Under the pieces are notes generated by a model. It had not been told where the DNA came from and made no database searches. It was given only the letters and a program-made list of their open reading frames with translations. Both the position numbers and the translations under genes were made by a program. A DNA stretch of 64,000 nucleotides from Basidiobolus meristosporus CBS 931.73 (Eukaryota; Fungi; Basidiobolomycota): contig MCFE01000111.1 in NCBI GenBank assembly GCA_002104905.1, positions 104,004 to 168,003 on the forward strand, given 5' to 3'. This document shows, in pieces, positions 751 to 63,722 of the stretch. Position 1 is the first letter of the stretch; every line of letters begins with the position of its first letter.

Positions 751-899
751 CTGTAATTAAACAATCCACCTGAAACGAACATTTATCCAGTAATCTTCTG
801 CCATAAGCCGATATCAACATTCTGACCACAGGCTGGCATCGCGGTGACTTATTTATTTATATGCGAATAAAGGTAGTTGGACCATAGTAAATAAAGGTT

Positions 900-2741
900 T
901 TAGGAGAATCCAAACAATCTCTTTTTGGTGTCTAAGATAGTTTTACCTATTCCAAGAATACCTCCTAATCCTTTTTTAGCTCCATTATAGATTGATCCGA
1001 AGAACCCTCCTCCTCCTCCTCCTCCTCCTCCATTACCATCACCACCACTACCGCCTTGACCACCGCCTTGACCGCCGCCACCGCCTTGACCACCACCACC
1101 ACCCTGACCTCCATTTATAATATAGTAGCCTTGGCCTCCCTGACCACCTTGTCCTTGCCAGCCTCCTTGTTGCCACCCGTATCCACCTTGCCCTCCTTGC
1201 CAAACTTGACCTCCTTGGCCTCCTTGACCTCCTTGACCTCCTTGACCTCCTTGGCCTCCTTGACCTCCTTGACTTCCTTGGCCTCCTTGTTGCCAGCCGT
1301 ATCCACCCTGTCCACCTTGGCCTCCCTGTTGCCAGCCGTATCCACCCTGTCCACCTTGGCCTCCCTGTTGCCAGCCGTATCCACCCTGCCCACCTTGGCC
1401 TCCCTGTTGCCAGCCGTATCCACCCTGCCCACCTTGACCTCCCTGTTGCCAGCCGTATCTACCCTGCCCACCTTGACCTCCCTGTTGCCAACCATATCCA
1501 CCCTGCCCACCGTTCCCTTTATATCCAGAAGGAACGTAATATTTGACCTTTCTCTTGGGCTGAGGAGGATATTTGGGTTTGGTCTTGTCCCCTGTCGGGT
1601 ATGTGGGCTGGCGCTTTTTGACAGCCTCCTTGAGTTTGTAGGATTTCTTGATCTTCCCCTTGTAGGAGTCGTCCTGATCTTCGCGTTGGCGTATGGTCTT
1701 GGCCTTCCCCTTGTAGGAGTCGTTGTGATCTTTGCGCCGGCGTATGGTCTTGACCTTTCTTACTTTCTTGACACGCTTCTTTTTATTCGAACCGGAACTG
1801 CGCTTCTCTCCATAACCTTGGTCAGTGCTAGAGGTGCTGGTACCTGAGCCGTATTTAGAGGTGGAACTGCTGTCCGAACCGTATTTAGAGGTGGAGCTGC
1901 TGTCCGAACCGTATTTAGAGGTGGAACTGCTGTCCGAGCCATATTTAGAGGTGGTGCTACTCCCTGAACCATAATTGCTCTTGGGACTCTCTTCTTTTGA
2001 CTTCGCTAAGTAATCCGATAGATAATCGAAGATCCTGGACTCGCCTTTAGAGGAATCGTCAACTTTCTTGGGCTTGTAGGAAATATTAATCTTGGGCTTC
2101 GGACTTGGCTTCGGGCTTGGTTTCGGGCTTGGTTTCGGTTTCGGCTTGGTTCCCGAACCATAGGAAGAGCCTGAGTGTGAGTGAGAGCTAGAGCCAGAAC
2201 CATAGGAGGAGCCGGACTGAGAACTGGAGCCAGAGGAGGAGCCAGATGAGGAACCGGAACCAGAGGAGGAGCCGGACTCGGAACTGGAGCCAGATGAGCC
2301 GGACTCCGAGCTAGACCCAGAGGAGGAACTGGATTCTGAGTAACTACCCCCAGTGGATGAAGTTTCGTAAGACCACTCTCCGGGATTCTGGATGATGCTG
2401 TAGGAACCGCTTGATCCAGAGCTTGATTCCGAGGAACCTGAGCCATAGCCAGATTCGGAATAGCTTCCACTTGTGGTTGAGGTTTCATACGAGTATTCTC
2501 CAGGACCAGCAACGGTTTCGTAGACATCAGGTGACTTGCCAGTTATGACATACTCTTCTGTGCCATCAGGATGCTTGATGGTTTCCGTGGTATAAACCAT
2601 ATTGTCTGGGGAGGTCTTTGTGCCGGCAGAATCATCCTTCGCGACGCCACTGCCATACCCACCCTCAGCATTGCTTTTATCCTCTAGTCCATAAGTGCCC
2701 AGTAGCACGGCAGATAGCACAAACAGTTGCTGAAGAAGCAT
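900..2741 (-). CDS. Secreted modular low-complexity protein (Ser-rich, PKPS, SKYGSDSSST, Lys/Arg-rich and GYGWQQGGQGGQG repeats), 613 aa, no recognisable family
   Basis: Intronless ORF. True ATG at 2741; the ORF-track start is a TTG. The N-terminus MLLQQLFVLSAVLLGTYG is a signal-peptide-like hydrophobic stretch. Repeats keep the frame throughout. Confidence 0.85.
   Translation of the reverse strand: MLLQQLFVLSAVLLGTYGLEDKSNAEGGYGSGVAKDDSAGTKTSPDNMVYTTETIKHPDGTEEYVITGKSPDVYETVAGPGEYSYETSTTSGSYSESGYGSGSSESSSGSSGSYSIIQNPGEWSYETSSTGGSYSESSSSSGSSSESGSSGSSSESGSSSGSGSSSGSSSGSSSQSGSSYGSGSSSHSHSGSSYGSGTKPKPKPSPKPSPKPSPKPKINISYKPKKVDDSSKGESRIFDYLSDYLAKSKEESPKSNYGSGSSTTSKYGSDSSSTSKYGSDSSSTSKYGSDSSSTSKYGSGTSTSSTDQGYGEKRSSGSNKKKRVKKVRKVKTIRRRKDHNDSYKGKAKTIRQREDQDDSYKGKIKKSYKLKEAVKKRQPTYPTGDKTKPKYPPQPKRKVKYYVPSGYKGNGGQGGYGWQQGGQGGQGRYGWQQGGQGGQGGYGWQQGGQGGQGGYGWQQGGQGGQGGYGWQQGGQGGQGGYGWQQGGQGSQGGQGGQGGQGGQGGQGGQGGQVWQGGQGGYGWQQGGWQGQGGQGGQGYYIINGGQGGGGGQGGGGGQGGGQGGSGGDGNGGGGGGGGGFFGSIYNGAKKGLGGILGIGKTILDTKKRLFGFS
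1277..1510 (-). repeat. Coding minisatellite, 6 x 39 bp (GYGWQQGGQGGQG), followed in the protein by about 8 x 9 bp (GGQ) at ~1206-1276
   Basis: Unit ccagccgtatccaccctg(t/c)ccaccttggcctccctgttg is repeated tandemly; a seventh degenerate YGWQQ unit lies near 1177. Confidence 0.9.
1848..1975 (-). repeat. Coding minisatellite, ~4 x 30 bp (SKYGSDSSST)
   Basis: Unit gtatttagaggtgga(a/g)ctgctgtccgaacc is repeated tandemly. Confidence 0.9.
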
Positions 2742-3355
2742 GGCAGTATCCAAAGTAGGGCGCGGGTTCTAGACTTCCACAGTAGCCCCACCAGGTGACA
2801 CAACCGTCTTTTATGTAAAAATGGACAGTTTCAGGAAGATGCTGGGATAAGCATCCATGCTGAAACCTTAGTAACAGCTGCAACTCGCAGTGCCAACAAT
2901 ATATGACGGGTCTGATGCAGATCTTCCTCGGCGACTTCAAACGGCGATCGGTTTCATCTTGGAACCGCACCTCTATTGGCGGCAGAGAAGCCAGGCTAGA
3001 AACGGGGATGGAACTCACTAGGTGGAGAGAAACGTTTAACCGCAGCCAGAGGATTGGTCACTGGATAGGAAATCCAAATAGCTGCTCTAGGCTAATCAGA
3101 TCCAAATCTAGGCGAGGGAGGGGAGCGAGAACCACAACAAATGGTTCTCGTAGCTTAATTTTGCTCCAATTTTCCAGCAAACCTTGGTTGAAGGGTTTCT
3201 ACAGGGAATTCCTGCGATCCAATTCATTTCCTTCCACTATATATGGATGGTGTATACTCCGTGCAGGTCGTGGTTCTTTTTTTTGCATCGAGTGGAGTCA
3301 TCGCTTCCACAGTAACCTCCTTTCCTTTTCTGCGCTCCCTTTCTTTCTTAATACC

Positions 3356-6886: not shown

Positions 6887-8410
6887 CTAGAAGCGGGATA
6901 GATCGCACTCGGTCAACTTCACGATCTTGGTCTTGTTGATGATTTTGTACCCGAAGTAGAGTACGGCAAAGATGATGATGGCAAGGTAACCACCAATACA
7001 CACGCCCCAGTCGAAATGACCATTGGTGTATGCTTCATACCCTTGCCCGCCAAGAACAACTGCGCACAGGACAAATGCGAGAATGGGGCCGAATGGGTAC
7101 AGGCGGGCTCTGTATGGCAATTCGTCCAAAGAATGCCCCTGAGCGAGGAATGCTTTACGGAAACGATAGTGGCTCACTGCAATTCCGATCCAGGCAATGA
7201 AGCCTGAGGTACTGGAGGCACGCAAAAGCCACATGTAGATGACACCGTTCCCGAAGAGGGATGTCAGAAACGCCAAGCACCCAACAACAGCGGTAAGGAT
7301 CAGAGCGTGCATGGGAACCCCGCGTGAGTTCACCCGACCGAAAATCTTGGGGGCCATGTTGGAGTTGGCCATCATCCATAGAGTGCGGGTGCATGCATAA
7401 AGAGCAGAGTTTCCAGCGGAGAGGACAGTGATGAGGATAATGGCGTTCATAACGTCCGACGCAGGGCCAAGGCCAGCAAGTTTGAAGACCAAGGTGAAGG
7501 GAGAAATGGCAACGTCCTGGACACTACCCGAACTCACCAGGTTGGGGTCTGTGTAGGGAATGAGGAAGCTGATGATCATAATGGCGCCAATATAGAAGAG
7601 CAGGATTCTCCAGAAAACCTGTTTGATGGCGGTTGGAACGTTCTTCTCCGGGTTTTCGCTCTCTCCGGCGGCCACTCCAACCAACTCGGTTCCCATGAAA
7701 GAGAAACCGGCAACCAAGAAAACGCCCAGCGTGCCGAGTGCGCCATCTACGAAGGGGGCATCACCCAAGGTGAAATTTCTGGTACCGTACTTCACACCAC
7801 CAAGGACACCGGTAGCAACAAATATACCAATGATAATGAAGATCACGACGGTTACTACCTTGATCAGAGCAAACCAGTATTCTGCTTCGCCGTATCCCTT
7901 CACGGAAATAGAGTTGATCCCCACGATGATCACCAGCAAGCAGGCACTCCATACCCAGTTCGGAACATGAGGGAGCCAGTATTGCATGATCAGACCTCCA
8001 GCAGAAAGCTCCACCGCAACGGTCAGAGCCCATGAATACCAGTAGTTCCAACTGAGAGCAAATCCGAAGGCTGGGTCAACAAAGCGAGCACCGTAAGCAT
8101 TGAAAGAGCCCGAGATTGGCATGTAGGTGGCCATCTCCCCCAGACTGGTCATCAGGAAGAACACCATGATGCCGATTAGTCCGTAGCCAAGTAGAGCACC
8201 ACCAGGTCCTCCGGTAGCGATAGAAGCACCGCTGGCAAGGAAAAGGCCCGTACCGATGGTACCTCCGATAGAAATCATCGATAGATGGCGCCCCTTTAGC
8301 GATCTTCTGAGTTCGGCTTTCTCGCCCTCGATGCTGCAGCTCTCCAGCTCGGCTAGCTTCTCGGGGTCTTTTAAGTGGGATTGTTGGGTAAACGATCGCT
8401 CGGCTTCCAT
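6887..8410 (-). CDS. APC-family amino acid permease, LysP-like, copy A (507 aa, intronless)
   Basis: RHLSMISIGGTIGTGLF, GEAEYWFALIKV, GTELVGVAAGESENP, VFWRILLFY and SHYRFR motifs. ATG at 8410 (MEAERSF). Confidence 0.92.
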   Translation of the reverse strand: MEAERSFTQQSHLKDPEKLAELESCSIEGEKAELRRSLKGRHLSMISIGGTIGTGLFLASGASIATGGPGGALLGYGLIGIMVFFLMTSLGEMATYMPISGSFNAYGARFVDPAFGFALSWNYWYSWALTVAVELSAGGLIMQYWLPHVPNWVWSACLLVIIVGINSISVKGYGEAEYWFALIKVVTVVIFIIIGIFVATGVLGGVKYGTRNFTLGDAPFVDGALGTLGVFLVAGFSFMGTELVGVAAGESENPEKNVPTAIKQVFWRILLFYIGAIMIISFLIPYTDPNLVSSGSVQDVAISPFTLVFKLAGLGPASDVMNAIILITVLSAGNSALYACTRTLWMMANSNMAPKIFGRVNSRGVPMHALILTAVVGCLAFLTSLFGNGVIYMWLLRASSTSGFIAWIGIAVSHYRFRKAFLAQGHSLDELPYRARLYPFGPILAFVLCAVVLGGQGYEAYTNGHFDWGVCIGGYLAIIIFAVLYFGYKIINKTKIVKLTECDLSRF

Positions 8411-8623
8411 GTTGTGTGTATTAAGGGGCACTGTACAGCAGAGCGTGTGAGTAATTCTAGTCTTGAGAATATGAAACTGCGAGGAGACTCTCACGGCATT
8501 TATAAGAAACCAGAGATTCCTCGACCGTAACCCTGGGGTTGGACAGAAAAAGAGAGGGAGATATGCCATAAACGGTACATGTCAGGCTACCATTTGTCCT
8601 CTGGATATTTTCTAGACCAAATG

Positions 8624-8670
8624 CAACCCAATTACCCTGTGGCTTCTGCTCTGAACAACCCAATTACCCT
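8624..8670. promoter_or_regulatory. 15-bp perfect direct repeat CAACCCAATTACCCT (8624-8638, 8656-8670) in the divergent permease promoter
   Basis: Two exact copies 32 bp apart, about 215-260 bp upstream of permease A. A regulatory role is inferred only. Confidence 0.35.
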
Positions 8671-9439
8671 TAACCATCTACGAGGAATACCAAAAAAAGC
8701 CATGTATCGACCAATATGGAAGTACCTTGGACGAAAAGTATAACATGTGAGGAATTTTCTGGCCAGGAAAGGAATTTTCAACTTTGGCCTGGATAGATCA
8801 GGATGACTCACGGAGCAGTTGTTACAAATCCATGGATTCATAATGGTTACCATAGGGGGCATTATTTATTGTCAATATGCTCGCACTTTTTATTTGCTGT
8901 ACGGCTCAGCAACGTTACGGGAAAGCGGCTTAATTAACTGATCGCTGATAAGCCTAATGCAAGGGTTGATGAGCATGTTTGGAAGGTTGCTTCGAAAACA
9001 TTCTCCATGTGATTGCTCGAAAGGGAATTCGTGACAATAGAACATTCCTCCCACACCGAAAAGTCACCCAACCCAACGAAAAGTCTACATGTGAGCGATG
9101 GAAGGTGATTAAAATGGACAAGTGAAATTTTCTTCGCTTATCTACAGAGGTTAATGGTGCTGGCCAATTGCTACTGTTACTACCGTTCACTCTGCTAATC
9201 CATGATCTCTCAGGCGAAGGATTTAAGTTAATATTGGTTCCCATATCAGGCATGGTGCTAGTCGACAAATCTAAAATAAGCTTTTGCCTTGTCATCCATC
9301 CACTTCATTAAAGTCAGTTGACTGGAATTAAACTTCCTGAAGTGAGACCCCTCCCTCCACCCATTCGGTTCCTATAAAAAAGCATCCGTCACCGTCTCAG
9401 AGACCCAACAACCCTTCTATTGATTATAACTAATTCACA

Positions 9440-10957
9440 ATGGGAGGAGATATAGAGCTACAAACTAATACCTATTTCACAGAACAGAAGAAGACCCTCG
9501 ATGTTGAAAGCAACTATCCTGAATCGACAGAGGGTGGGGGAGGGCTCAGAAGAACACTAAAGGCGCGTCACCTGTCCATGATTTCCATCGGCGGAACCAT
9601 CGGAACCGGGCTTTTCCTGGCCAGTGGTCTTTCCATCAGCAATGGTGGACCTGGTGGTGCTCTGCTCGCCTATTCTCTAATTGGTATGATGGTGTTCTTT
9701 ATGATGACCAGTCTGGGCGAGATGGCCACGTACATCCCCGTTTCTGGTTCATTCAACACATATGGTGCCCGCTTCGTCGACCCGGCCTTTGGATTCGCCC
9801 TCAGTTGGAACTACTGGTACTCATGGGCACTCACGGTGGCGGTGGAGCTTTCGGCGTCGGGCCTGATCATGAAATACTGGTTTCGGGATGTCCCCAGCTG
9901 GGTGTGGAGTGCCAGCGTTTTGGTGATCATCATAGCAATCAACTCATTCTCCGCGAGAGGATACGGCGAGGCGGAGTACTGGTTCGCCTTGATCAAAGTC
10001 ATCACCGTGGTCGTGTTTATCATAGTAGGCATATTTGTTGCTGCCGGTGTTCTCGGAGGCGTCAAGTACGGGTTCCAAAACTTCACCAAGGGAGAAGCCC
10101 CATTTGTGAACGGTGGGCTTGGTGTCCTCAGTGTCTTTCTGCTGGCCGGGTTCTCTTTCATGGGAACAGAGCTGGTAGGCGTGGCTGCCGGTGAAAGTGA
10201 AAACCCGGAGAAGAACATCCCCAAGGCTATCAAGCAAGTTTTCTGGCGTATTTTACTCTTCTACATTGGCGCAATCTTCATCATCGGCCTATTGATTCCA
10301 TATGACGATCCTTTGTTAACCAGCGAGGATGTCCAGACCTCTCCCTTCACCCTTGGCTTTAAGCTTGCTGGCCTTGGATTCGCCCCCGATGTCATGAATG
10401 CCATTATACTGATTACAGTTCTCTCGGCCGGAAATTCTGCCCTCTATGCATGCACTCGAACTCTATGGACCATGTCCCATTCAAACATGGCCCCCAAGAT
10501 CTTTGGCCGCATCAATTCTCGAGGTGTGCCCATGTACGCAATGCTACTTACTGCTGCGTTCGGGTGCCTTGCTTTCCTAACATCGTTATTCGGAGATGAA
10601 GTTGTATACGAATGGCTACTCAAGGCTTCCGGCACCTCCGGGTTTCTCGCCTGGGTTGGAATTGCTGTCAGCCACCTCCGATTCCGTAGAGCATTCATCG
10701 CACAAGGTCACACACTTGATGAGCTTCCTTACCGCGCCAAATTGTATCCGTTTGGCCCTATAGTCGCTCTGTTACTTTGCATAGTGGTGATAGCCGGACA
10801 GGGCATCAATGCCTACTCTAACGGCAAGTTCGATTTCCTTCAGGCTTTCGGAGAATACCTAGCCGTCATCTTGTTCGCGATCCTGTATCTTGGATTCAAG
10901 ATCATCAAGAAAACCAAAGTCGTTCCACTAACCCAGTGCGATTTTAGCCGAACCTAG
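9440..10957 (+). CDS. APC-family amino acid permease, LysP-like, copy B (505 aa, intronless)
   Basis: Close paralog of 6887-8410 with the same motifs, transcribed divergently. TATAAAA near 9373. Confidence 0.92.
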   Translation: MGGDIELQTNTYFTEQKKTLDVESNYPESTEGGGGLRRTLKARHLSMISIGGTIGTGLFLASGLSISNGGPGGALLAYSLIGMMVFFMMTSLGEMATYIPVSGSFNTYGARFVDPAFGFALSWNYWYSWALTVAVELSASGLIMKYWFRDVPSWVWSASVLVIIIAINSFSARGYGEAEYWFALIKVITVVVFIIVGIFVAAGVLGGVKYGFQNFTKGEAPFVNGGLGVLSVFLLAGFSFMGTELVGVAAGESENPEKNIPKAIKQVFWRILLFYIGAIFIIGLLIPYDDPLLTSEDVQTSPFTLGFKLAGLGFAPDVMNAIILITVLSAGNSALYACTRTLWTMSHSNMAPKIFGRINSRGVPMYAMLLTAAFGCLAFLTSLFGDEVVYEWLLKASGTSGFLAWVGIAVSHLRFRRAFIAQGHTLDELPYRAKLYPFGPIVALLLCIVVIAGQGINAYSNGKFDFLQAFGEYLAVILFAILYLGFKIIKKTKVVPLTQCDFSRT

Positions 10958-13114: not shown

Positions 13115-16100
13115 TTATTTGCCAGCACCGGTGGACTTGACAGTTCTGACGGTGGGGTACATTTGTAGTCCGGCGATTTCTGGGTTCCAGTTGATTGGCT
13201 TCCTCTTTCGGATGATGATCCGGCGTACGGTAGAATAGAGTATGAGGAACGCACCAAACGCTAAGGGGATCAGCCAGTAGAGTGGGCTGAGACGGTGTGA
13301 AGTACCGAATGCAATATTGAATGGTGGGATATAGACGATCATCATAGCCAAGGCAGCGCCGCAAAACATTCCATAGAATGTCTTCTTGTTGCGGAACATG
13401 TACTTGCCGAATGGAAGACGGATAAGACATTTGCAGGCAAACAAGTTGAAGCACTGACAGATCATGATTGAGAGATAGAAGATGCTCTGGGCTTGTGCAA
13501 GTGCTTCCTTTTGATCTTCATTGGTCAGGACTCGGCCGCTTGGGAGGGTATATGATGGTGAATCATTCAGGAAATATTGGTTGCCTTCCTGCATGTGACG
13601 AGCCTGGGAGGGAGTGATACCGAATTCCCGATACAGAACCACAAAGTAGGCGGTCATGGCAGCAGCAAATTCGATGAGTCCTGCCTCGACATAAGCCCAA
13701 GATAATACACCAGCATCCACCAGAACCTCGTCGTCGGTCTCTTCAAAGAGCTCCCTCCAGTAGTAAGAGGTGAATTTTTCTGAAACACTGTGTTTGAAGA
13801 GAGTCATTTTAGATGGCCGGCTCTCCTCCCCAGACTCAACATCGACTGAAGCTACAGGGCGTCTGGCCATTTGGTTTCTGAGCCGAGTTACTGAACGAGC
13901 AGTTACAGGCTTACGAGGTGGAAGCTTCATCAATCCACCCTTGGTTTCAGGAAGTTCCCAGGCGTACGAGAGAGCGGCAAATATCTCGAAACCCAAGTCA
14001 ATGACCAGAATCAAGATGGCAGATAGGGGGAGTGGAAGAGGCACAATGATGTACAACAAGTTCGGCAGGATTTCAGGCGTGCTGTGGGTCACTGTGTACT
14101 GGATGGACTTCTTCAAATTGGCAAAGATAAGACGTCCTTCTTCAACTCCCTTGACGGTGGAGGCAAAGTTATCGTCCAGTAAGATCATGGCCGCTGCTTC
14201 CTTGGACACATCCGAGCCGGACTCGTTCATAGCTATACCCAGATCGGCTTTCTTCAGGGCGGGGGAGTCGTTCACACCATCCCCGGTAACACCCACAATG
14301 TGGCCCATGGCCTGCGCACGCTTCACAATCTCCAACTTATGCCGGGGGGAGGTACGGGCAAAGATTATCTCATTCTTGGAGAAAATGATGTCCCAATCGT
14401 CGTCAGACAGGGAGTCGATTTGCTCCCCGTGAATCACAATGGCCGAATATTCATGCTCTTGAACGCTCTCAACCGGGCGTCCAGTGCGCTTGGCTACTTG
14501 GATCTTGGTTTCCGAGAGCACAAGATTGATTTTCCGTCCGACCGCTTCGGCAGTTAATGGATGATCACCGGTAACCATCATGACTTGAATTCCAGCAGAA
14601 CGACAGCGACCAATGGCCTCACGGACTCCGTGTTTGGGAGGATCTTCAAGAGAAGCTAGACCAACGAAGCATAGATTGCTGGTGGGGTAGTTTTGGGCTT
14701 CCTTGGTAAACTGGAAATCTTCTGGGTACTGATCGCCGGGTAGCAACAGCTGAGCAAAGGCAAGCACGCGATGGCCCTTACTGGCCATGTACTCGTAGGT
14801 CTGATCATAGAGGGCCTGATGCTCCCCAGACAACGGAACGGCCTCGTTGTTGATCAGGATGGAACTGCATAGTCTCAACACGCGCTCAGGGGCTCCTTTA
14901 ATGTACAGAGTCAGGGGCCCGTTGGCGTGACGTTTCTGGTGGATGGTCAATGCCCATTTGTTATCGGAGTTGAAGGGGATTTCAAAGACCTTGGGGAAAT
15001 TGTTGGCCGCATTGTCGAAGTTGGGGAGGTTTTTGGCAGCAAATCGAACCAAACCCGATTCGGTAGCGTCTCCCAGGATTTGGCGCTCCTCCACAGGAAT
15101 ATCAACCCGATCGAATTTGGCCTTGGAGTTGAGGGTCGAAATATACATGATCTCATTGACGCCGGGTGCATCGGCAGTAAGTGGGACCTCTGGATTACCA
15201 GCGGATGGGAACGCGGTATACATTACAAGCCCGCTCCAAACGTTGGTCACTGTCATCTGGTTTCTGGTCAACGTACCAGTCTTGTCGGTAGCCAGAAGTG
15301 TGATGGCACCAAGAGTCTCCACACCCTTAAGATCCTTGACTAGCACTTTGGCATCAGCCATTCTCTTGGCGGCGATGGTTAGAAGCATGGTCACTGTGGC
15401 GGGAAGACCCTCTGGGACCCAAGCGACGAAGACGCCAATGGCAAAATTGAGAGTGAACTGGATTTTCCCGTAGATGACTTGTCCAACAATGAAGAAGATG
15501 ACGGCGGTCAAGAATGCAACCGAGGCGATGATTTTAACAAAATTATCGATTTCAGTGGTTAGAGGGCTCTTCCTCTTCTTTTCTCCTTGAGTGAGGCCAG
15601 CGATTTGGCCCAACACAGTATTGTCACCCGTTCGGATGACTATGCCATACCCCTCACCAGAAACAACCAGAGTACCATTGAATGCAATGTTACTGGCCTC
15701 CAGAGGGTTCTTATGGGTGTTGGCTTTGGTTCGCTCTTGTGGCTCCGATTCACCAGTAAGAGAAGAGTTGTCAACCTTCATGTCAGATGAGGCAAATATC
15801 AGCAGATCAGCAGGAATCTTGTCCCCCATTCTGGCCAAAACAATGTCTCCTGGAACAAGATCTGCAGCAGCCATCTGATTCAATCGTCCATCGCGGATAG
15901 CGAAGCACTTGGCGGGTATCATGTTAAGGAAAGAAGCAAGGATAGAGGCACTTTTCTGCAGCTGATAGAACTCGATGAATGCGTTCACCAAGGCAACTCC
16001 GATCAGGATGGCTCCAAGATAAATGTTGGCCTGGTTGTTCACCGGATCGATAGCTAAAAGCACGTATTGAAGAATACCCGCCACAACCAGCAGAACATTA

Positions 16101-16528
16101 AAAAGCCCCGCCAGACATTCAAGGTACAAGAAGAGAGGGGATTTCTTTTTCGGTGGAGTCAATATGTTGGGTCCATGCTCCTGGAGCCCTCTTGTGGCCT
16201 GGTCAGTGGTCAGTCCTTGGCTGTTTCCAGGTTTGGCAATATCGGCAGAGGTGTTGTACTTGTGGCAAACCTCCTCAAAGCCCATCAGATGCTCAATAAT
16301 ATCGACATTCTTCTTTTGTTTAGAGTGCGGGGTTTTCTCGTCAAATGCTTCGGCAGCGGGTTCGTTGGAGGAGGGGGGGACGTAGGATACGGGAGTGATA
16401 TCAGAAGGGCGGAGAGGTTTCTCAGAATCCTGAAACACGACTTTGCTATGATGGGTGGCGGTAGAGATCAGGTCGTCATCATTGGGGTTGCTACTCAAAT
16501 TATTGTTGTTACTATTATTGGCTGACAT
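13115..16528 (-). CDS. P-type ATPase, type IIC (Na,K/H,K-ATPase alpha-like), 1137 aa, intronless
   Basis: DNSSLTGESEP, VPEGLPATVT, DKTGTLTRNQMTV, KGAPERVL, MVTGDHPLTA, FARTSP, TGDGVNDSPALKKADLGIAM and a P2C-like TM5/TM6 (YTVTHSTPEILP, ILVIDLG). Confidence 0.9.
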   Translation of the reverse strand: MSANNSNNNNLSSNPNDDDLISTATHHSKVVFQDSEKPLRPSDITPVSYVPPSSNEPAAEAFDEKTPHSKQKKNVDIIEHLMGFEEVCHKYNTSADIAKPGNSQGLTTDQATRGLQEHGPNILTPPKKKSPLFLYLECLAGLFNVLLVVAGILQYVLLAIDPVNNQANIYLGAILIGVALVNAFIEFYQLQKSASILASFLNMIPAKCFAIRDGRLNQMAAADLVPGDIVLARMGDKIPADLLIFASSDMKVDNSSLTGESEPQERTKANTHKNPLEASNIAFNGTLVVSGEGYGIVIRTGDNTVLGQIAGLTQGEKKRKSPLTTEIDNFVKIIASVAFLTAVIFFIVGQVIYGKIQFTLNFAIGVFVAWVPEGLPATVTMLLTIAAKRMADAKVLVKDLKGVETLGAITLLATDKTGTLTRNQMTVTNVWSGLVMYTAFPSAGNPEVPLTADAPGVNEIMYISTLNSKAKFDRVDIPVEERQILGDATESGLVRFAAKNLPNFDNAANNFPKVFEIPFNSDNKWALTIHQKRHANGPLTLYIKGAPERVLRLCSSILINNEAVPLSGEHQALYDQTYEYMASKGHRVLAFAQLLLPGDQYPEDFQFTKEAQNYPTSNLCFVGLASLEDPPKHGVREAIGRCRSAGIQVMMVTGDHPLTAEAVGRKINLVLSETKIQVAKRTGRPVESVQEHEYSAIVIHGEQIDSLSDDDWDIIFSKNEIIFARTSPRHKLEIVKRAQAMGHIVGVTGDGVNDSPALKKADLGIAMNESGSDVSKEAAAMILLDDNFASTVKGVEEGRLIFANLKKSIQYTVTHSTPEILPNLLYIIVPLPLPLSAILILVIDLGFEIFAALSYAWELPETKGGLMKLPPRKPVTARSVTRLRNQMARRPVASVDVESGEESRPSKMTLFKHSVSEKFTSYYWRELFEETDDEVLVDAGVLSWAYVEAGLIEFAAAMTAYFVVLYREFGITPSQARHMQEGNQYFLNDSPSYTLPSGRVLTNEDQKEALAQAQSIFYLSIMICQCFNLFACKCLIRLPFGKYMFRNKKTFYGMFCGAALAMMIVYIPPFNIAFGTSHRLSPLYWLIPLAFGAFLILYSTVRRIIIRKRKPINWNPEIAGLQMYPTVRTVKSTGAGK

Positions 16529-34687: not shown

Positions 34688-37541
34688 CTATTTTTTGGAT
34701 TTCAAAGGATCGATGATGGTACCAGCCTTGGTGGTGACTCTGGGCAGAATCATCTTCTGGAACGACGATGTCGCATTCCATTCCTTGCCGATTGGTGCTC
34801 TCATGCTCTTCTCGTATTGCTCTCTGGTTTGGTATGGGAATGGTACTTGCGTTACAGTATATTTGGCATTCTTCTTGATCTTCTTCTCGTTGATGATCAC
34901 ATGCTTCAGCTTGGAATCCTTGCGTTTCTTGGCATCTATGCCATCGGCGGGATTGGCCTTCTTGATGAACTTGGGCTGCTTGGACTTAACGCCTTGTCCT
35001 ACCCAATGGCCCCAGCCGGGGAGTGTAACATCCTCGTCCTTGGGTGCATCTTCTTCAACCTCCCTGGCCTTCTCCTCCTCAAACTCCTCAACAACATTAT
35101 CGTTGGCAAATGCTCTTTGGACCAAGTCTCGCTGAGTGAAAGCATTGGGGTTCTTAACGTGAGTGATCGCAATCGACTCGCTCTCGTCGTTAGAGGCATC
35201 CGAATCATCTCCGTCAGCAGTGCTAAAGGTCAGCACATTGTTCAAGTCGATATCAACACTGTCATCCTCTTGGTCCTTGGTTTTCTTCTTGAGTTTAGAA
35301 ACCAGTTTCTCGGATTTGTTCTCGGTTTTTCCGACTGCCTTGTTGACCTTCTTGCTTTGCGTACTGACTTTGTTGTCATGCTGCAACCAAGGATTGCTTT
35401 CGTCATCCACAGGCCCTTGGGGCTGGGTGGCTTCGGGGGCGGTGGAGTTCAAGGACACTGGCCCACTGAGGCGCGTATTGTGAGCGGCTGAAACGGAAAC
35501 CTTGGAGATCTGACCACCTTCATTCATTGATAGCTTGGGCTTCTTGGGAGTGTTCTCAGCTGGGGGTTCGCTGGACTTGGCTCCACCACTGAACACAAGT
35601 CTTCCTGGATTGCCGCCCACCATGGTTGAAATCTCCTTCTCCTTGGGCTTCTTGCCGCTCGATTCATCCTCGCTCATGTACTCGAGATCCTCCTTGAAGC
35701 TTTCGATCATAGCCTTGTTCTCCTCTCTTTGACGATCCATGGCTTGTTGCATGAATTTCATGGCGAAGATTCCCTTCTTGGGCTTTTGGTCGTCCTCGTT
35801 GACCTCCAATTTCTCAATTTCATCGAAAGCACGTTTCTTGACCTCGTTAGGGTTGTCGTCTTCATCACTGGCGCCGCTGGCAAAGGAAGCATCTGAATCT
35901 TCATCGGAAGCCATGTCGTGGATCTTGCGTCGAAGGGCTTCCCCTTTTTGGAGCTGGTCAATAATGGCCTGACGGCTCTCATCATCGTTCCCGTGCTTAA
36001 GCATCTGCTTGGCCCACTTCCCGGTGTTCTTGTGCTTCAAGGTCATGCGCTCCTGGGCTCGGGCGATTTCGGCCTTATGTCTCTCATCGCCATCCAACTC
36101 AGGATCAGCGTCTCGCAACAGCTGCATTTCCTTCTCCTTCTCCTTCTTCTTCAACTTGCGGAAGGCCTTACTCTTGATCTTTGAGACTCGCTTTGCTTTC
36201 CTTTCCTCTCTGAACATCAATTCTCGCATCAATCTCAATTCACGTCGACGGGCTTGGACTTCCTCGACTGAGAGCTTATTGAGCTCCAACTCTTCATACT
36301 CCTTCAAGTTGCTTTCCTTGATGCCGCTTTCTTCCAAAACTGTCTGGACTTGCTTCTCCAACTCATTCGAGGCTTCAAATTTACTGGCCAAGGAGGCATT
36401 GGTGATGTTGTCTGGTGCATGCTCACTCGTGGGGAACGTCAAGTGGTCGGCCTCGCGATTTTTCTTCACAATCGGAACCCATTCGCTGACCTTCTTCTTC
36501 GCATCCTCGTAAGCAACCTCACGGGTGAACTTGTCTTGAACCCGCTTGGGCAGAGGGGCCGCTAGTGCATCCTTGTAGTCGCCTTTGTTGCCTCCACTCT
36601 CCAGTGATTGGATCTTTTTCTTGAGACTGCTAAAGCCCGATTTATCTTCCACAGCACCAAGCATATCGCTAATGCTAATCTTCTTGCGAGATTCCGAGCC
36701 TAAACAAATTGCCAGAGTGATTAACACAGGTCATCCCAAGTGAAAGAACCGAGATTTGGTGGTACCTTCTGCACTACGCACGGCCAGGTTGAACTCCGAT
36801 TCGGCATAGGCCTCGGTCTTTTCCTTAGCTACCTTGCGGCTCTTCTTCTTTCCAAGGGAGGTGATAAAGGAGTCCAATGTTTGGAGCTTCGATTCGGCCT
36901 CCTCATCTTCTTCACTCTCCTCACTTACGGAGATTTCATCTTCGTCAAGCACGCTTTCATCGCTTGATCCGCCCATGTGGTCCTCGAAGGAGACTTTCAT
37001 CTTGGGCTTCTCGTTCTCTTTGGCAGGCTCGGACGAAAGCATTTCGGAAATATCCATGTATTCTTCGTCATCATCTTCGTCCTCTTCCTCCTCCTCCTCC
37101 TCCTCTTCTTCATTCAAGTCCTGAACCTCTTGCTCACTCTCATCGTCCGAGTCTTTGTGAGTATCGGCCTTCTTATTCACCTGAAATGGAAAAGTCAGTA
37201 CAACCGTAGAAATATTAGAAAACCAGAGGTCCAAATACCTTATTCCTTCCCGAAAATTTGAAATGACTGTATTTCTCTTCGTCGGATTCGTCAAAGGCCT
37301 CATCGGAATCAAGCTCCTCATCGTCCTCTTCATCGATGTCCCCCACCTCGTATTCGTAATTCTCCACCTCATCCAGATGCTTTCCCCTAGCAATATCAAT
37401 GTCATCGTCGGCCTCAAACACGTCGGTGACCTTGGGCTTAGTGACCCAGCTATTTCCCTGGCCACTTTGGCGTCTGTTGCTTTTCGGAGTAGCGGAACGG
37501 GTTTTCTGAGAGCCCCTCCCTTGTCGTTTATTTGGTGCCAT
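34688..37541 (-). CDS. UTP14: U3 snoRNA-associated protein 14, multi-exon
   Basis: AYEDAKKKVSEWVPIVKKNREA, KIKSKAFRKL, RMTLKHKNTGKWAK, LPGWGHW, HVIINEK, VPFPYQTREQYEKSMRAPIGKEWN and acidic N-terminal exons. Confidence 0.93.
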
Positions 37542-38509: not shown

Positions 38510-39661
38510 ATGAAGGGTTTTTTTGCTGAGCTGTCACACCCACGAGAAATCATTAGGAACTTCGTTCCTGGATGGTTCGGTATAACTATGGGTACTGGAA
38601 TCACCGGTATCGTCATCGCCAACTTCCCATTCCCATTCCGCGGAATGGTTGTCATCGGTACTATCTACTTCATCGCCAACATCTGCATGTTCTGCCTGTT
38701 CACGATGCTCTTTGTCGCCCGCCTTGTTATGTTCCCGGAGACCATTTTCCCGCTTCTGAAAAGTCATCAGCTGCTGGCGTTTGGTGCGATTCCTATGGGT
38801 CTGACTACACTGACTAACTACATAATCCTGGTGGTTCGACCTACACACTCCTGGGGATTGGAGTTGGCCTATGTGTTGTGGTGGATCGAATTCGTGTTCA
38901 CCTTAGTCAGTATATTTGGAGTGCCATACTGTATGATGAGATACCAGAAGCACTCCGCGGAGACTATGTCAGGGCTGTGGCTCTTCTCACTCGTCCCAGC
39001 AGTGGTTACTGGTGCCTCCGGATGCTACTTGTCCCGCTACTTAGAGCATGAAGGTCATAGAGCGCCTATGATATTGACCATCTCTGGAATTACCCTAGGA
39101 TGTGGTATTTCATTGGCACTCCCAGTGATCGGCATCTACTTCTACAGGCTGGTTGTCCACGATTTCGTCTCCAAGGATCTTATTGTCAGTAGTTTCTTGC
39201 CAGTCGGACCATTGGGTCAGGGTACCTACGGTGTCATTGAAATGGGATGGGCATTCAAGGAACTCATCGGAGACAAGTATGCTCCAGGATTTGGCGACAG
39301 CGTCTTTGCCTGTTGTGTCGTAGCAGCTTACTGCTTATGGGGTTATGGCTTGTACTACATGTTCTTTGCCTTCGTTTCGCTGATTGTCAGACTGAGAGAA
39401 GGAATTCCATACAACCTGGGTTGGTGGGGACTTACTTTCCCCATCGGGGTGTTCACAGCAGGAACCATGAACATTGCCGTCGCGACTGACTCGAGATTCT
39501 TTCGTGGAATCACGTCATTGTTCGTGTGTATTCTGGTGATCAACTGGTTTGTTGCAGCCATCAGCACCCTTGGCAGAATCTACACTGGATCGGTCTTCAA
39601 GGCACCATGCCTTCAACAGCCAGCCAAGAAAGCCGATCCTGAGATGCAAGCTATCCCTTAA
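38510..39661 (+). CDS. TDT/SLAC1 family anion efflux protein (SSU1/MAE1-like), copy 1, 383 aa
   Basis: NFVPGWF..TMGTG, FGAIPMGLTT, SSFLPVGPLGQG and GWWGLTFPIG motifs; about 10 TM segments; intronless. Confidence 0.9.
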   Translation: MKGFFAELSHPREIIRNFVPGWFGITMGTGITGIVIANFPFPFRGMVVIGTIYFIANICMFCLFTMLFVARLVMFPETIFPLLKSHQLLAFGAIPMGLTTLTNYIILVVRPTHSWGLELAYVLWWIEFVFTLVSIFGVPYCMMRYQKHSAETMSGLWLFSLVPAVVTGASGCYLSRYLEHEGHRAPMILTISGITLGCGISLALPVIGIYFYRLVVHDFVSKDLIVSSFLPVGPLGQGTYGVIEMGWAFKELIGDKYAPGFGDSVFACCVVAAYCLWGYGLYYMFFAFVSLIVRLREGIPYNLGWWGLTFPIGVFTAGTMNIAVATDSRFFRGITSLFVCILVINWFVAAISTLGRIYTGSVFKAPCLQQPAKKADPEMQAIP

Positions 39662-39842
39662 ATGGATTTGAAAGTTGGTTGTTTAGATCGTCCTAGAATT
39701 TATGTAACAATGGGTAAACTGTAGATCTGGTATCATTAATAAAAGTATCAACTATATTTTGTATGTGTCGGGGATTTAAAGCAATTTTGGTAATTGCTGG
39801 CCATTATAGGAAATATTCTGGGCCAGAAATTGCCCCCTAGTG

Positions 39843-39922
39843 ATACAATTAGCGTATTCGGATATCTAATTAATGCCTATAATTCTGTTCGCTCATACAA
39901 TTAGCGTATTTGGATATCTAAT
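39843..39922. repeat. 28-bp direct repeat ATACAATTAGCGTATT(C/T)GGATATCTAAT at 39843 and 39895
   Basis: Two copies with one mismatch, 52 bp apart. Confidence 0.8.
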
Positions 39923-39971
39923 CAATGTGAACAATGAATTTGCCCTGAATTCTATAAGGTTTGTAGATCTT

Positions 39972-40027
39972 GATCTAAGTGACCAAGTTAGGTGAGTAAT
40001 CAGGTGTTATTACGAAATTTACAACCA
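39972..40027 (-). mobile_element. Degenerate LTR terminal fragment, same family as the copia element
   Basis: gatctaagtgaccaagttaggtgag...aaatttacaac resembles the end of the LTR at 59680-59735. Confidence 0.55.
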
Positions 40028-40920
40028 GTTGGACTAAAGTATTCCTACTCTGTTCAAGTAATGATCAAAATCTATTGCACTTACAATTGATTTTCTTCAT
40101 ACCTGGGGACTACTTGCTAGCTTTTGTAAGTGATAATAGCACCGGAAGCTGCTATATTGCTCAAACTCACCTAAAGGACCTTAAATCATCCTCAGAACTT
40201 ATCACAGCCTCTCAGACAATTTGTTCTTGCATTGACCAAACCTACATAAAAGTATAAATACTTCATTCTATCTAAATAAAGTCATATATATCTGTGTGCT
40301 CTGAGTTGCTACCATGCTCCTAGCATTGACTTCAGACATTTCTGTGACACAATATTTCAGTAAATTCTCCTTGAGCCAATAAACATCATTACTCTAACTT
40401 AACTAACATGAGCATGCTATATGCATTCCATTTTCACCCAAGCTACTTATATACCTAAGATTCCATTCAGCTTATTGCTAGGCTGTGATATATTATATGA
40501 AGCTTTGCTAGTAATACACTGGATAATTCTCAGAATTTGTGAGGGCCCAGAAGTTATCAACATTTTTAAATCTAGCAAAAAGCCCCAAATGCCCCAAATC
40601 TCCAAATGATCTGCTTGAACCAAATAAGACAGCAAGTGACTATTATACATATTCTGAATATATTTAAGCCTTGTGTGACCATGTGCTGTCAGTTATATAT
40701 CTTGGTTTTGGCTGGTAAGATAATAACCAACACTCACAGTTATTAAAGGCCAGGAGTTCACAGGTCTTCAAGCTTACTCCATAGACTCAAGACTTAGTAT
40801 ACTACTCTCTGCAACATCCTTAAGGCACTCTCATCATTAGCTTTGTAGTCTTGTCCAGGGCTCCTTGCTAAAGGTACAAGACCTGAATTTCAAGTTTATC
40901 CCATTTTGTAAGTTATAACT

Positions 40921-41252
40921 TGTTGTAAGAGTCTTGGAGATATTGGAAGTGATTGGGAGAACAAGTAGATTTTGTGGTTTTCACTTAATGTTTTATTGAA
41001 TGTAAAAGTAGTATTTATACTTTTACATGGTCTTGGCATAACAAACACGTAGAATAGGTTAAGGAAGGTCCCAAGAACATGTATGCAAAGTTTGGGGCTG
41101 TTTGGACAACTTATCTAATTCTCATGTTCTGGGTAAATATTCTAAGTAAATCCTGACAAGGAATTTGGCCAGTATTCTCTAGGATATGAAGGTAATGATC
41201 TAAGTGACTAAGTTAGGTGAATATTTAGGTGGAAATACAAATTTTTACAACA
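40921..41252 (-). mobile_element. Solo LTR (332 bp) of the copia family, TSD TAACT
   Basis: TGTTGTAA...TTACAACA termini, high similarity to 59387-59735 but lacking a ~17-bp segment, and TAACT on both flanks (40916-40920, 41253-41257). Confidence 0.92.
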
Positions 41253-41381
41253 TAACTAACCTGTAGATATTCCACTTACATGATCACCTAGGTTGTGGCT
41301 TAAAGTCCTTGGCATTTAATGCAACAGCTCTCTGGTGAGACTTACTTGTAATGCTTTTCCACCAAGATGTCCTGCTATTAG

Positions 41382-41728
41382 TGTTGTAAGAGTTTTGGAG
41401 ATTTTCACAGTGTTTGGCAGGACAAGTAGATTACATTGTTTTCTTTTTATGATATATTGAATTTGAAAGTATTATTGGTACTCTAACATGGCCTTGGCCA
41501 AGCACACATGCAAAATACGTGCAAAAAGGTTTCAGGTACATGTGGGCAAAGTTTGGGACTGTGAGAGCAGCTAATTGCTTTTCATGCTCTAGGTACCTGA
41601 TTATTAGGTGAAAATGTTCTAGGTAAAGCCCAACAAGAAATTTAGCCAAAATTCTCCAAGACCTGTTGATAGTGCTCTAGGTGAATTTGGTAGGTAAATA
41701 TATAGGTGTAATTACAAAATTTACAGCA
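41382..41728 (-). mobile_element. Older diverged solo LTR of the same family
   Basis: TGTTGTAAGAGTTTTGGAG...TTTACAGCA is collinear with the LTR but heavily substituted; no intact TSD. Confidence 0.75.
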
Positions 41729-42118
41729 ATACTTGGTGTTTGATTGACTTCAAGCAAAGTTATTATACTTTTGAAGAACTTTGTATAGTTATAACTGAAA
41801 TGCTTTAAGAAAGACCCTGATAGGCTTTTGGATGGGTATGGGAATATTGGTAACTTCTGGGTCTTGACTAATTCTAGCAATTAGTTGTTATTTTATGCAC
41901 TCAAGTCTTTTGATAGCTACATGATTGAGGTAAAATCTAAATATTTACAATGTAAGCTCCTTGTTCTGTGAGTTACTTCCATGGTCTTTAAAACCAAACA
42001 GCATTTTATTAGCGCTGTACTGCTATTTTAGGCAATCTTTCAGGTGGTTGCATTATTGAAATCAGCAAGACAGCTGCTGCATTTGATATGAGTATTACTA
42101 TGGCACAGCACTATATAG

Positions 42119-42802
42119 TGTTGCAAATTTTGTAGTTGCACCTAGATATTAACCTAACTTAGTCACTTAGAGCATTACCTACAGATCTTAGAGAGTTCTT
42201 ACCAAGTTTCTTGTTGGGATTGACTTGGACTATTCTCACCAAAGTACCAGACACCCTGAATATGAGATTTTGATAAGCTGTCCAAACTGTTGTAAAAATT
42301 TGTGATTCCACCTAAATATTCACCTAACTTAGTCACTTAGATCAGTACCTCCAAATCCTAGAGAATACTGATTAAAATCCTTGTTGGGATTTACTTAGAA
42401 TATTTACTCAGAACATGAAATTTGATAAGTTGTTCAAACAGCCCCAAACTTTGCACACATGTTCTTAGGACCTTTCTAAGCCTATTCTATGTGTTTGTTA
42501 TGTCAAGTCCATGTAATACTATGAATACTACTTTTAAATTCAGTAAAACATTAAGTGAAAGCCACATAATCTACTTGTTCTCCCAATCACTTCCAATATA
42601 TCCAAGACTCTTACAACACAAACAGCCCCAAAACTTGCACATGTGCTTTTGGGACCTTCATAAGCATATTTTATGTGCTTGTTTGGCCAAGACTATGTAA
42701 AAGTATAAATACTACTTTTACATCCAATAAATCATCAAGTGACAACCACATAATCTACTGGTTCTCCCAATCACTTCCAATATCTCCAACACTCTTACAA
42801 CA
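42119..42802 (+). mobile_element. Solo LTR (~348 bp, TSD TATAG) interrupted by a nested solo LTR
   Basis: TGTTGCAAATTT...CTCTTACAACA termini and TATAG on both flanks (42114-42118, 42803-42807). Confidence 0.85.
42288..42618 (+). mobile_element. Nested solo LTR (331 bp, TSD CAAAC)
   Basis: TGTTGTAAAAATTTG...CTCTTACAACA termini and CAAAC on both flanks (42283-42287, 42619-42623). Confidence 0.9.
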
Positions 42803-44237
42803 TATAGGACATGTATTTACTTGCACACAAGAGGGATAAAACCTCAAATACTGAATACTGTAACTTTAAAGAAATTGTCACTTTCAGTACTCCCTAGAGT
42901 TTTGCAACACTTTAGACTTTCCAGTCTTTGAAGTAAAGCCTGTCTAAGGCTCATAGAAGTCTACAGGAGAAGGCTAATATTATCATAGAGCAGCTGAATC
43001 ATTGCTATCTAAGCTAGAGTGTTAAAGCCAACAAATGCTTAGACCCAGATTCAGCGTTAAATGTTATGATACCAGTCAAATGTGAGTCTGGATGAGAAAG
43101 AGAGCAATGAGAAGGATGCAGTCCCTGTATTTTGACTTAATAAATCAGTAGACAAAGTGTCAGTGTGTTTGAGCAAACTTAATTGATCTGTGTGCAAAGC
43201 TTGACGGTACTTGGGCATGCTTGAACCAGAAAGTAATGAGGAGTCAGCATGTCAGCTTGAAGTTGATACGCGATAGTTTCACAATGAAAAGGAGCCATCA
43301 ACAAATATACACATCACTTAGCAGCATCAGCAGACATCTTAAATCAGGGTATGTTTAGTATTGAGTATAGGTAGCAATAACTCATTAGAAATGAGCGCAC
43401 TAGCATGTATAGAAGCCAGAATGTATTGAGAAAGTGTTTAGATTGTTCCAGGATTTACACGGGTTGTTTAGAAAGTCCTGTATGAACAGTGAGTTAGTTG
43501 ACCATTAACTATGCTTTGTTTATCTGATTGTCAAAGCGGTTTCCTGTATTTGTGGGAGAGATTAGCCATTCCAAGCGATGATGGTTGTAGCAATGGATTT
43601 ACGCTAATCAAAACGATATCAATCTGAATGCTAGCTACCGCAGGAAATATTTTGAGCCAAATACTGGACCATTAGTCGCAAAAATGGACTAGCTATCATT
43701 GACTACGCTGTATGTACCTCGCCTGGGACAATATGATATCTCTTCTCACTGGAGAGCATCCATGATCTTTGCATTATTAGAAAAGTAAGTTCAAAATGGA
43801 ATGCTGGCCAGCTTAGGCTTATACTTGACTAAGCTCCGCAATGAGGAGTTTGCAGTCTAAATAACCAATAGTCAATGCCAATGATACCAATGAATATACA
43901 TAGTGCGCCATCATTGGCATATTCAGTCATTTGGGAGGAAGGATAAACCATTCCCAAATAATTACCACATCGGGACATCATCTCGGAAAGTAGATTCCTA
44001 TATTGGATGGGTCTGTGAATCATTTGAAGTGAGTCACGTTTGTAATTGCATTTTCCGAAGGTACAACCATATGACAACTAGGAATCAACGCCATCTCCAA
44101 GCGTTGAGTATATGTAACGCAATATGAATGCTTCTGAGTAATACGCAAAAGTATTAGTATAAATAGTAGGCTTCAGCAACACAACACGGCACAACCACCT
44201 CTAGCTGCTATAAGTTTATTCGTTCCATACAACTAGT

Positions 44238-45431: not shown

Positions 45432-46066
45432 ATATTTCTTCTACACACACAACTTAACGCTGTTGCTTCTTATAACCACTTGTAAAATAGTAATTTTAAA
45501 ATAAATATGTAAAGTATATCAACTTCAAACCGGAATGTATCAGGCAGCATTGTTCCGTGTTGACATGGAAATCGCCTGTTTACATGTAACTTACTCATAT
45601 TGTGATTATTACCATTAGATAAATAGCAGTCCGCGGTTAATTGACTTAGTGTCCAATGTTAAGTACAGTAATTTATCAACTGTTGGGTTAAAATAACATC
45701 ACACTAATGGGCAATCATGGCACAGATAATAAGGATTCTCGGATTACTAATTACCCAGAGTTGCTTTATATGATCGAGTAAATCCATCGTATATCAAGCA
45801 ACCTTTTACCGAGAAATACCAAATTAATCACTATGTTAAATTTGAGTTAAATGTCAGACAAACCGCTAAAGATCGCTGATCGAAAGAACATTTGAAATAA
45901 ACTTTATATTGTACTAAAACGTTTATGACCTAGTCCAATCAGCATTTACAAAGCATTCTCCCCATCAAGGTTCCATGAATAAACTAGTATAAATATAACT
46001 TCAAGAACTCCTCAAGTCTAGCAGGATCAATACCTATTTTACTAGCCTCCTAACCGCATTCACAAT

Positions 46067-63718: not shown

Positions 63719-63722
63719 AACC
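63711..63722 (-). other. Primer binding site GGTTATGAGCCC, half-tRNA(iMet) type
   Basis: Directly follows the 5' LTR (CAACA|GGTTATGAGCCC), the arrangement known from Ty5 and Drosophila copia. Confidence 0.8.

Follow-up and report, generated by a model that had tools for sequence, protein, structure and literature searches.

A ten-block, largely disordered repeat protein of Basidiobolus meristosporus as a candidate secreted matrix, adhesive or wall-coat protein

The minus strand of a 64,000-nucleotide stretch of Basidiobolus meristosporus CBS 931.73 (contig MCFE01000111.1; hereafter the window) carries at positions 900-2741 a genuine gene, as indicated by the length of its frame, its codon usage, the synonymous bias among its repeats and the existence of N-terminal relatives. 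Its product of 613 amino acids is predicted to be almost wholly disordered, and the sequence searches detected no homologue of it outside Basidiobolus. The protein is unusual in its ten-block architecture, in the presence of both charge types on one chain and in a Gly/Gln repeat that contains Trp. We tentatively regard it as a matrix, adhesive or wall-coat protein that is secreted and associates with itself, a reading to which we grant somewhat less than an even chance.

From the ATG at 2741 to the TAA at 902-900, one frame runs uninterrupted through 613 codons and the stop; its location on the minus strand is an addition to the initial annotation, in which the blocks of the protein had been described. 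When the same bases were shuffled 2000 times, the longest stop-free run reached 243 codons (mean of 101), the observed frame being 2.5 times that length, and the other two frames of the minus strand contain 8 and 28 stops. Furthermore, it is only in the 613-codon frame that synonymous codon choice is like that of five neighbouring genes (mean log relative usage of +0.02 vs -0.12 and -0.25 in the other frames), its G+C content at third codon positions (0.475) lying below that of the neighbours (0.57-0.65). The repeat units vary mostly at synonymous sites, which points to the amino-acid sequence as the conserved level. Indeed, when unit pairs are summed, the codon differences of the YGWQQGG units are synonymous in 48 cases and non-synonymous in 10, every difference among the three exact copies of SKYGSDSSST is synonymous, and synonymous divergence between the two PGE repeats is saturated for a non-synonymous divergence (dN) of 0.245. 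A TATA-like and an AATAAA-type motif on either side of the frame (Table 1) fit a gene, as weak evidence. On the opposite strand, an open reading frame (ORF) of 263 residues rich in Thr, Leu, Ala and Ser (1056-1847, plus strand) was discarded as a by-product of low-complexity DNA.

The translation is devoid of Cys and contains 25% Gly, 18% Ser, 9% Lys, 9% Gln and 7% Tyr, the last amounting to 41 residues. All the ordered blocks listed in the initial annotation are found in it, including the seven YGWQQGG motifs, the GGQ runs, the poly-Gly stretch, the duplicated DSYKGK unit and the amphipathic tail, but two motifs had to be corrected: the second of the repeats given as GPGE(Y/W)SYETS reads NPGEWSYETS, and the fourfold SKYGSDSSST consists of three exact copies and a variant, SKYGSGTSTS. 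The chain falls into two halves of opposite charge, residues 19-312 being Ser/Thr-rich with a net charge of about -9 and residues 313-613 having a net charge of about +34. The end of the basic block (residues 376-410) is rich in Pro, Tyr and Lys. It is followed by 167 residues (411-577) comprising 96 Gly (57%), 44 Gln (26%), 9 Tyr, 9 Trp and 2 charged residues, with one Tyr-Gly-Trp per 13-residue unit in the Gly/Gln block. At the DNA level, arrays were located by Tandem Repeats Finder (TRF): a 30-bp array at 2200-2327 in the Ser/Gly block, a 30-bp unit present 3.5 times at 1849-1954 (94% matches) in the SKYGS block, where the decamers themselves occupy residues 263-304, a 51-bp unit present 2.2 times at 1646-1757 (86% matches) in the basic block with its duplicated DSYKGK unit, and a 39-bp unit present 6.1 times at 1276-1511 (96% matches) for the YGWQQGG array.

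Table 1. Features of the gene and its flanks, in window coordinates (aa, amino-acid residues; pI, isoelectric point; pLDDT, predicted local distance difference test score of the AlphaFold2 model).
Feature	Position	Strand	Description
Whole coding sequence	900..2741	(-)	613 codons plus stop, intron unnecessary; ORF length against shuffles, codon usage
Signal-peptide-like N-terminus, aa 1-18	2688..2741	(-)	ends in LLGTYG, small residues at -3 and -1; AlphaFold2 helix 2-17
Acidic N-terminal domain, aa 19-135	2337..2687	(-)	pI 4.05, net charge -13; two PGE[YW]SYETS repeats
Conserved beta-hairpin, aa 49-69	2535..2597	(-)	AlphaFold2 strands 49-56 and 62-69; most invariant alignment columns
Ser/Gly block, aa 136-197	2151..2336	(-)	40 Ser and 14 Gly in 62 residues; pLDDT <50
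Lys-Pro / Ser-Pro rod, aa 198-225	2067..2150	(-)	net charge +9, N-I-S sequon; TRF 12-bp array 2095-2138
Non-repeat linker, aa 226-262	1956..2066	(-)	short amphipathic helix 237-246 (AlphaFold2)
SKYGS decamer block, aa 263-312	1806..1955	(-)	three exact copies and one variant; ends in GYGE, KR next
Basic Lys/Arg block, aa 313-410	1512..1805	(-)	27 Lys, 10 Arg, net charge +29; KR at 312-313 as start
Gly/Gln/Tyr/Trp block, aa 411-545	1107..1511	(-)	YGWQQGG x7 in 13-aa units plus GGQ runs; nearly uncharged
Poly-Gly spacer, aa 546-577	1011..1106	(-)	25 Gly in 32 residues; pLDDT <50
Cationic amphipathic C-terminal tail, aa 578-613	903..1010	(-)	net charge +5; AlphaFold2 helix 581-610; small-xxx-small Gly pattern
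TATA-like TACATAAAAG	2808..2817	(-)	about 70 nt upstream of the ATG; putative, read from the sequence
AATAAA-type motif	849..860	(-)	about 40-50 nt past the stop; putative, read from the sequence

AlphaFold2 run on the single sequence gave a mean pLDDT of 42.8, with 479 of the 613 residues below 50. The only ordered elements of the model are the signal helix (2-17), the hairpin (49-56/62-69), the helix of the linker (237-246), whose helical hydrophobic moment of 0.52 is the highest of the protein, and the C-terminal helix (581-610; pLDDT of about 73-75, hydrophobic moment of 0.46). In a second run, restricted to residues 1-135 with a three-sequence alignment, the hairpin alone was ordered, its pLDDT being about 73-79 over the two runs, and its position is that of the best-conserved N-terminal segment. 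The 613-residue protein is carried letter for letter by the ESM Atlas, in a model of pLDDT 0.39; two parts of the protein examined there gave no feature matches, and structure matches based on a model of such a pLDDT are meaningless.

No family had been recognised in the initial annotation, and database searches lead to the same result. The whole protein and each block gave only sub-threshold low-complexity matches in Pfam and NCBIfam (Trypan_PARP, ClfB), and PDB sequence searches with the N-terminal domain, the Gly/Gln block, the tail and a protein of B. ranarum, P0021 (see below), gave chance-level matches only. A word-indexed protein search returned zero matches, self included, both for the entire protein and for residues 1-135, a metagenome scan with the N-terminal profile revealed no relative, and tblastn of each block against the window found no paralogue, the Ser-rich noise at 36.8-37.5 kb being its sole yield. 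An exhaustive HMMER search of 1.84 billion representatives produced 17 matches, two of which are real. These are hypothetical proteins of B. ranarum: P0003 (KAK9659719, K7432_018609, 143 residues; E-value of 8.7e-22, 60% identity over residues 1-100) and P0004 (KAK9768337, K7432_001133, 89 residues; 3.7e-17, 66% identity over residues 1-77). The other 15 (P0005-P0019; E-values of 3e-7 and weaker) are unnamed metagenome proteins matched through GGQ or Ser runs and were rejected as relatives. Since real relatives were found in B. ranarum only, the term orphan, used initially, holds with respect to described families but has to be narrowed to genus-restricted for the N-terminal 100 residues or so.

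Over the N-terminal 77-100 residues the identity to P0003 and P0004 is 57-66%, and the alignment of the three sequences has 42 invariant columns over about 85 residues. The columns cluster in the signal peptide, in GYGS, in TKTSPD and in MVYTTETIK..DG.EEY.ITG..D.YET. We provisionally group the 613-residue protein, K7432_001133 and K7432_018609 in a Basidiobolus N-terminal cassette family, having in common a MLLQ[QH]L.. signal peptide, GYGS, TKTSPD and the hairpin. A profile search with the N-terminal region recovered P0003 (3e-52) and P0004 (3e-40) and added P0020, with P0021 as its cluster mate (the pair being K7432_006097 and K7432_018262). The start of the protein, signal-peptide-like by inspection as initially proposed, is conserved in four B. 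ranarum proteins, P0020 and P0021 sharing only the signal peptide and the GYGS region before a different module that P0003 has too. In P0003, P0020 and P0021 the common signal peptide is followed by this module, which starts KK-TCSAPPTQAPFNNKAISYNQK, and P0021 runs on into an apparent folded domain with neither a Pfam nor a PDB match. The pattern in these three proteins suggests a shuffled N-terminal cassette with varied cargo and a dibasic junction.

The genomic context of P0004 deserves attention. An intron-less P-type ATPase gene of the window (13118-16528, minus strand), present in NCBI and EukProt, has a product that clusters at an identity of at least 90% with B. ranarum KAK9768328 (K7432_001126), which bears out the fungal origin proposed initially. 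The contigs of P0004 and of this ATPase orthologue each measure 46,389 bp, and the locus tags are seven apart. Because of the matching contigs, the near locus tags and the window-like gene order, K7432_001133 appears to be the syntenic orthologue of the 613-codon gene, with a gene model cut short. P0003, described as a paralogue, sits on a contig of 1,024 bp, and the annotation of both relatives covers no more than a short N-terminal piece; in B. ranarum, genes so rich in repeats apparently cause assembly or gene calling to fail. The cassette evolves fast, its identity being about 60% vs at least 90% for the neighbouring ATPase.

The preferred reading, namely secretion and self-association as a matrix, adhesive or wall-coat protein, is favoured because residues 411-577 display, by analogy, the 'sticker and spacer' pattern of gel-forming low-complexity domains, and the Gly/Gln block thereby resembles a glycine-rich protein of tick cement. 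The latter, tick-GRP77, is a disordered protein whose phase separation depends on periodic Arg and aromatic residues and which, on ageing, becomes an adhesive gel (PMC11794139). For the Basidiobolus protein, we infer secretion, glycosylation, self-assembly and a surface location along the following lines. After removal of the signal peptide, the acidic Ser/Thr-rich half (residues 19-312) would be O-mannosylated in the secretory pathway and would remain hydrated. Ser/Thr tracts of fungal secreted proteins are normally O-mannosylated, and the Ser/Gly block (136-197) is a probable target. The C-terminal half (313-613) would provide a polycationic Lys/Arg/Tyr/Pro block and 167 uncharged Gly/Gln-rich residues with Tyr-Gly-Trp stickers. 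Opposite charges would then attract each other and the evenly spaced aromatics would engage in cation-pi and pi-pi contacts; the resulting self-association might yield a dense gel or coacervate by which a fungal surface (spore, conidium or hyphal wall) is coated or glued, and the C-terminal amphipathic helix and the basic block could anchor this material to membranes or negatively charged surfaces. The glue, fibre or amyloid function and the Gln-Lys or Tyr cross-linking put forward in the initial annotation were proposed from composition: the protein may have such a function, and cross-linking may take place since a Gln block, a Lys block and 41 Tyr are present.

Several points weigh against this preferred reading. 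Inspection of the 613 residues revealed no glycosylphosphatidylinositol (GPI) signal, wall-linkage motif or Cys, and the 64-kb window contains no oxidase or transglutaminase. The protein is absent from a collection of 15 billion proteins searched by exact look-up, so that public annotation probably lacks a 613-residue model. The [KR]R sites, of which the basic block holds five and the tail a sixth, are equally compatible with proteolytic processing, and analogies based on composition are weak evidence.

Within the preferred reading, a bolder proposal can be formulated. Basidiobolus is a frog-gut fungus whose transmission relies on adhesive capilliconidia, and to our knowledge the spore-sticking and the elastic or adhesive wall materials of early-diverging fungi have no molecular description. 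Capilliconidia of Basidiobolaceae bear adhesive material at their tip (PMC13370150). The protein might thus be a self-contained complex-coacervate glue, both halves of which condense on secretion to give the capilliconidial adhesive droplet or another spore or wall cement; we consider this improbable, and no result on the 613-residue protein links it to capilliconidia. If true, an entomophthoralean or basidiobolalean spore adhesive would for the first time have a molecular component assigned to it, and the fungal protein would have converged in design on the cements of ticks, mussels and sandcastle worms. One chain unites design elements of animal bioadhesives, namely poly-Ser, poly-Lys with Tyr and aromatic-spaced Gly-rich blocks. 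Should the protein turn out to form a glue or a gel, it would provide a tractable recombinant material and a marker of the dispersal stage; otherwise, the protein would be another fast-evolving, lineage-specific secreted repeat protein.

Among the alternatives, the one that survives best, although we find it unlikely, is a pro-protein in which the acidic Ser-rich region (residues 19-313) neutralises the rest of the chain until a Kex2- or yapsin-type protease cuts at Lys-Arg; the freed cationic Gly-rich C-terminal polypeptide, or the tail, would attack microbial or other membranes as a defence peptide. Following a Ser/Thr-rich stretch of about 50 residues, the Lys-Arg at 312-313 is the first pair of basic residues and coincides with the charge switch (GYGE-KR, residues 309-313). 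Furthermore, the B. ranarum proteins with the common signal peptide show a YGE-KK or EEQ-KK junction before an unrelated module, and the tail is a predicted cationic amphipathic helix of 30 residues. However, four short sequences underlie the likeness of the junctions, Kex2 cleaves poorly at Lys-Lys, and a block with 38% Lys/Arg should contain dibasic pairs by chance. The Gly/Gln/Tyr/Trp block is almost neutral (net charge of +1), the tail is not preceded by a dibasic site, and a product of 300 residues far exceeds typical antimicrobial peptides. Nor do the repeats each have flanking Lys-Arg, so that the protein is not a strict member of the KEP class discussed below.

Somewhat less probable still is a passive mucin-like wall or surface mannoprotein, forming a hydrated glycosylated coat that protects, lubricates or helps to withstand desiccation but neither self-assembles nor adheres in a specific manner, its repeats merely drifting as in many fungal surface proteins. 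The content of 18% Ser and 25% Gly, the long Ser/Thr tracts and the Pro-Lys rod would suit such a coat, as would the fast evolution (about 60% identity vs at least 90% for the ATPase) and the near-identical, recently expanded repeats of the DNA. Against it stand the strong segregation of charges and the strictly periodic aromatic motifs, kept at the protein level through synonymous changes, and no GPI- or Pir-type wall-attachment feature was seen by inspection.

A secreted effector acting on host or prey cells, in which the basic block, with runs such as KKKRVKKVRKVK, would serve nuclear or nucleolar targeting or nucleic-acid binding after uptake, is very unlikely. By inspection this block does resemble classical nuclear localisation signals, and many effectors are likewise disordered, fast-evolving, lineage-specific and secreted; yet Basidiobolus lives chiefly as a commensal of the gut and as a saprobe, neither an uptake motif nor an effector domain is present, and the protein is mostly repeat material that has no counterpart in known effectors. 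Finally, we give hardly any credence to a non-functional sequence, either a decaying gene or a frame kept open by low-complexity repeats: the absence of the exact protein from the 15-billion-protein collection, the B. ranarum counterpart annotated at 89 residues only and the antisense ORF of 263 residues that low-complexity DNA yields as well are outweighed by a frame that spans ten compositionally different blocks, non-repetitive ones among them, by the synonymous bias of inter-repeat substitutions, by the signal peptide and hairpin kept across species and by codon usage in agreement with the neighbours in this frame only.

As for the genomic neighbourhood, a divergent PKA-like kinase gene shares a 610-bp intergenic region with the 613-codon gene. 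The window further contains the end of a RINT1/TIP1 gene, a carnitine acyltransferase, two amino-acid permeases, the P-type ATPase, ANKRD13-like, TPX2-like and Utp14 genes, five SLAC1/TDT transporters, an ABC transporter and a copia element. Because these neighbours are housekeeping genes and cross-linking enzymes are absent from among them, as are a protease and a second structural gene, the 'system' evoked in the initial annotation reduces to a lone gene. The two permease ORFs (6887-10957; 560 and 505 residues) are intron-less, lie head to head and have full-length AA_permease matches. The five SLAC1/TDT ORFs are in tandem (38510-51114, plus strand), four of them having exactly 397 residues with a spacing of 1.8-1.9 kb; two were checked against Pfam. 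An uninterrupted Ty1/copia-type polyprotein of 1367 residues (59747-63850, minus strand), in which gag, Pol beta-barrel, integrase and RVT_2 match Pfam, is possibly a young, intact retrotransposon. Immediately upstream of the Utp14 ORF, an ORF of 244 residues (36731-37465, minus strand) with Ser-rich tracts and no Pfam match probably encodes the N-terminal part of Utp14, acidic and Ser-rich, split off by an intron or a frame change; it is the source of the sole, low-complexity, tblastn matches to the 613-residue protein.

The protein was compared with several known protein classes. In the fungal Kex2-processed repeat proteins (KEPs), each repeat core is flanked by KR or RR (PMC7329392, PMC6339444). 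Like these proteins, including Ustilago Rep1-type repellents, the 613-residue protein has tandem repeats and dibasic sites, and its conserved N-terminus is signal-peptide-like by inspection, but membership was rejected, the [KR]R sites at residues 313, 322, 334, 376, 396 and 607 flanking no YGWQQGG, SKYGS or PGE unit. GPI-anchored adhesins of the Als, Flo or Mad1 type were excluded for want of a folded head, the AlphaFold2 hairpin (49-69) being the only candidate and no Pfam domain being found; residues 85-197 and 255-308 have the Ser/Thr/Gly-rich composition of an adhesin stalk. A GPI-type end was dismissed by inspection, the last 36 residues holding 5 Lys and 1 Arg vs 1 Asp (net charge of +5) in an amphipathic helix with basic residues seven to nine positions before the C-terminus. 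Neither is the protein a hydrophobin or another Cys-rich surface protein (CFEM and others), given zero Cys in 613 residues, nor a spidroin or silk fibroin: no Pfam silk terminal domain was found, the ends being a hairpin and a single helix in the AlphaFold2 model.

Likenesses are also found among low-complexity and adhesive proteins. Prion-like low-complexity domains are exemplified by the [G/S]Y[G/S]Q repeats of the FUS type and by the Gly/Trp/Gln octarepeat of PrP. Residues 411-577 are similarly Gly/Gln-rich, with Tyr and Trp as sole stickers and hardly any charge; this long uncharged stretch with evenly spaced aromatics falls in the prion-like or phase-separating class in a functional sense, not through homology. 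It differs from such domains in being richer in Trp, far richer in Gly and presumably extracellular, and PDB and profile searches disclosed no homology. Sandcastle-worm cement contains poly-Ser and Lys/Gly/Tyr proteins, mussel foot protein is made of Lys-Pro-Tyr decapeptides, and the pairing of an acidic poly-Ser component with a basic Lys/Tyr/Gly one is the design of complex coacervate glues. In composition only, the Basidiobolus protein has the same two components, residues 376-410 resembling the mussel decapeptide, while both charges reside on one chain, unlike in the marine cements.

Early-diverging fungi possess lineage-specific secreted repeat proteins that are intrinsically disordered and often missed by annotation (PMC8786786). 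The arabinogalactan-protein-like proteins (AGLs) of Glomeromycotina (PMC8786786) resemble the present protein as lineage-restricted secreted disordered proteins with conserved ends and variable tandem repeats, often missing or broken in annotation; they are, however, small, Pro/Gly- or Gly/Asn-rich and often GPI-anchored, whereas the 613-residue protein has ten blocks and no GPI-type end. With tick-GRP77 (PMC11794139) it would share secretion, disorder, a Gly-rich composition and periodically placed aromatic and basic residues. No sequence homology between the two was detected: the Basidiobolus protein is about 8 times longer, its cations (predominantly Lys) and its aromatics stand in separate blocks, the aromatic block is Gln-rich and an acidic Ser-rich half is added. 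Taken together, these comparisons suggest that the protein is by kind a lineage-specific fungal secreted tandem-repeat disordered protein and that by design it resembles the bioadhesive proteins of animals.

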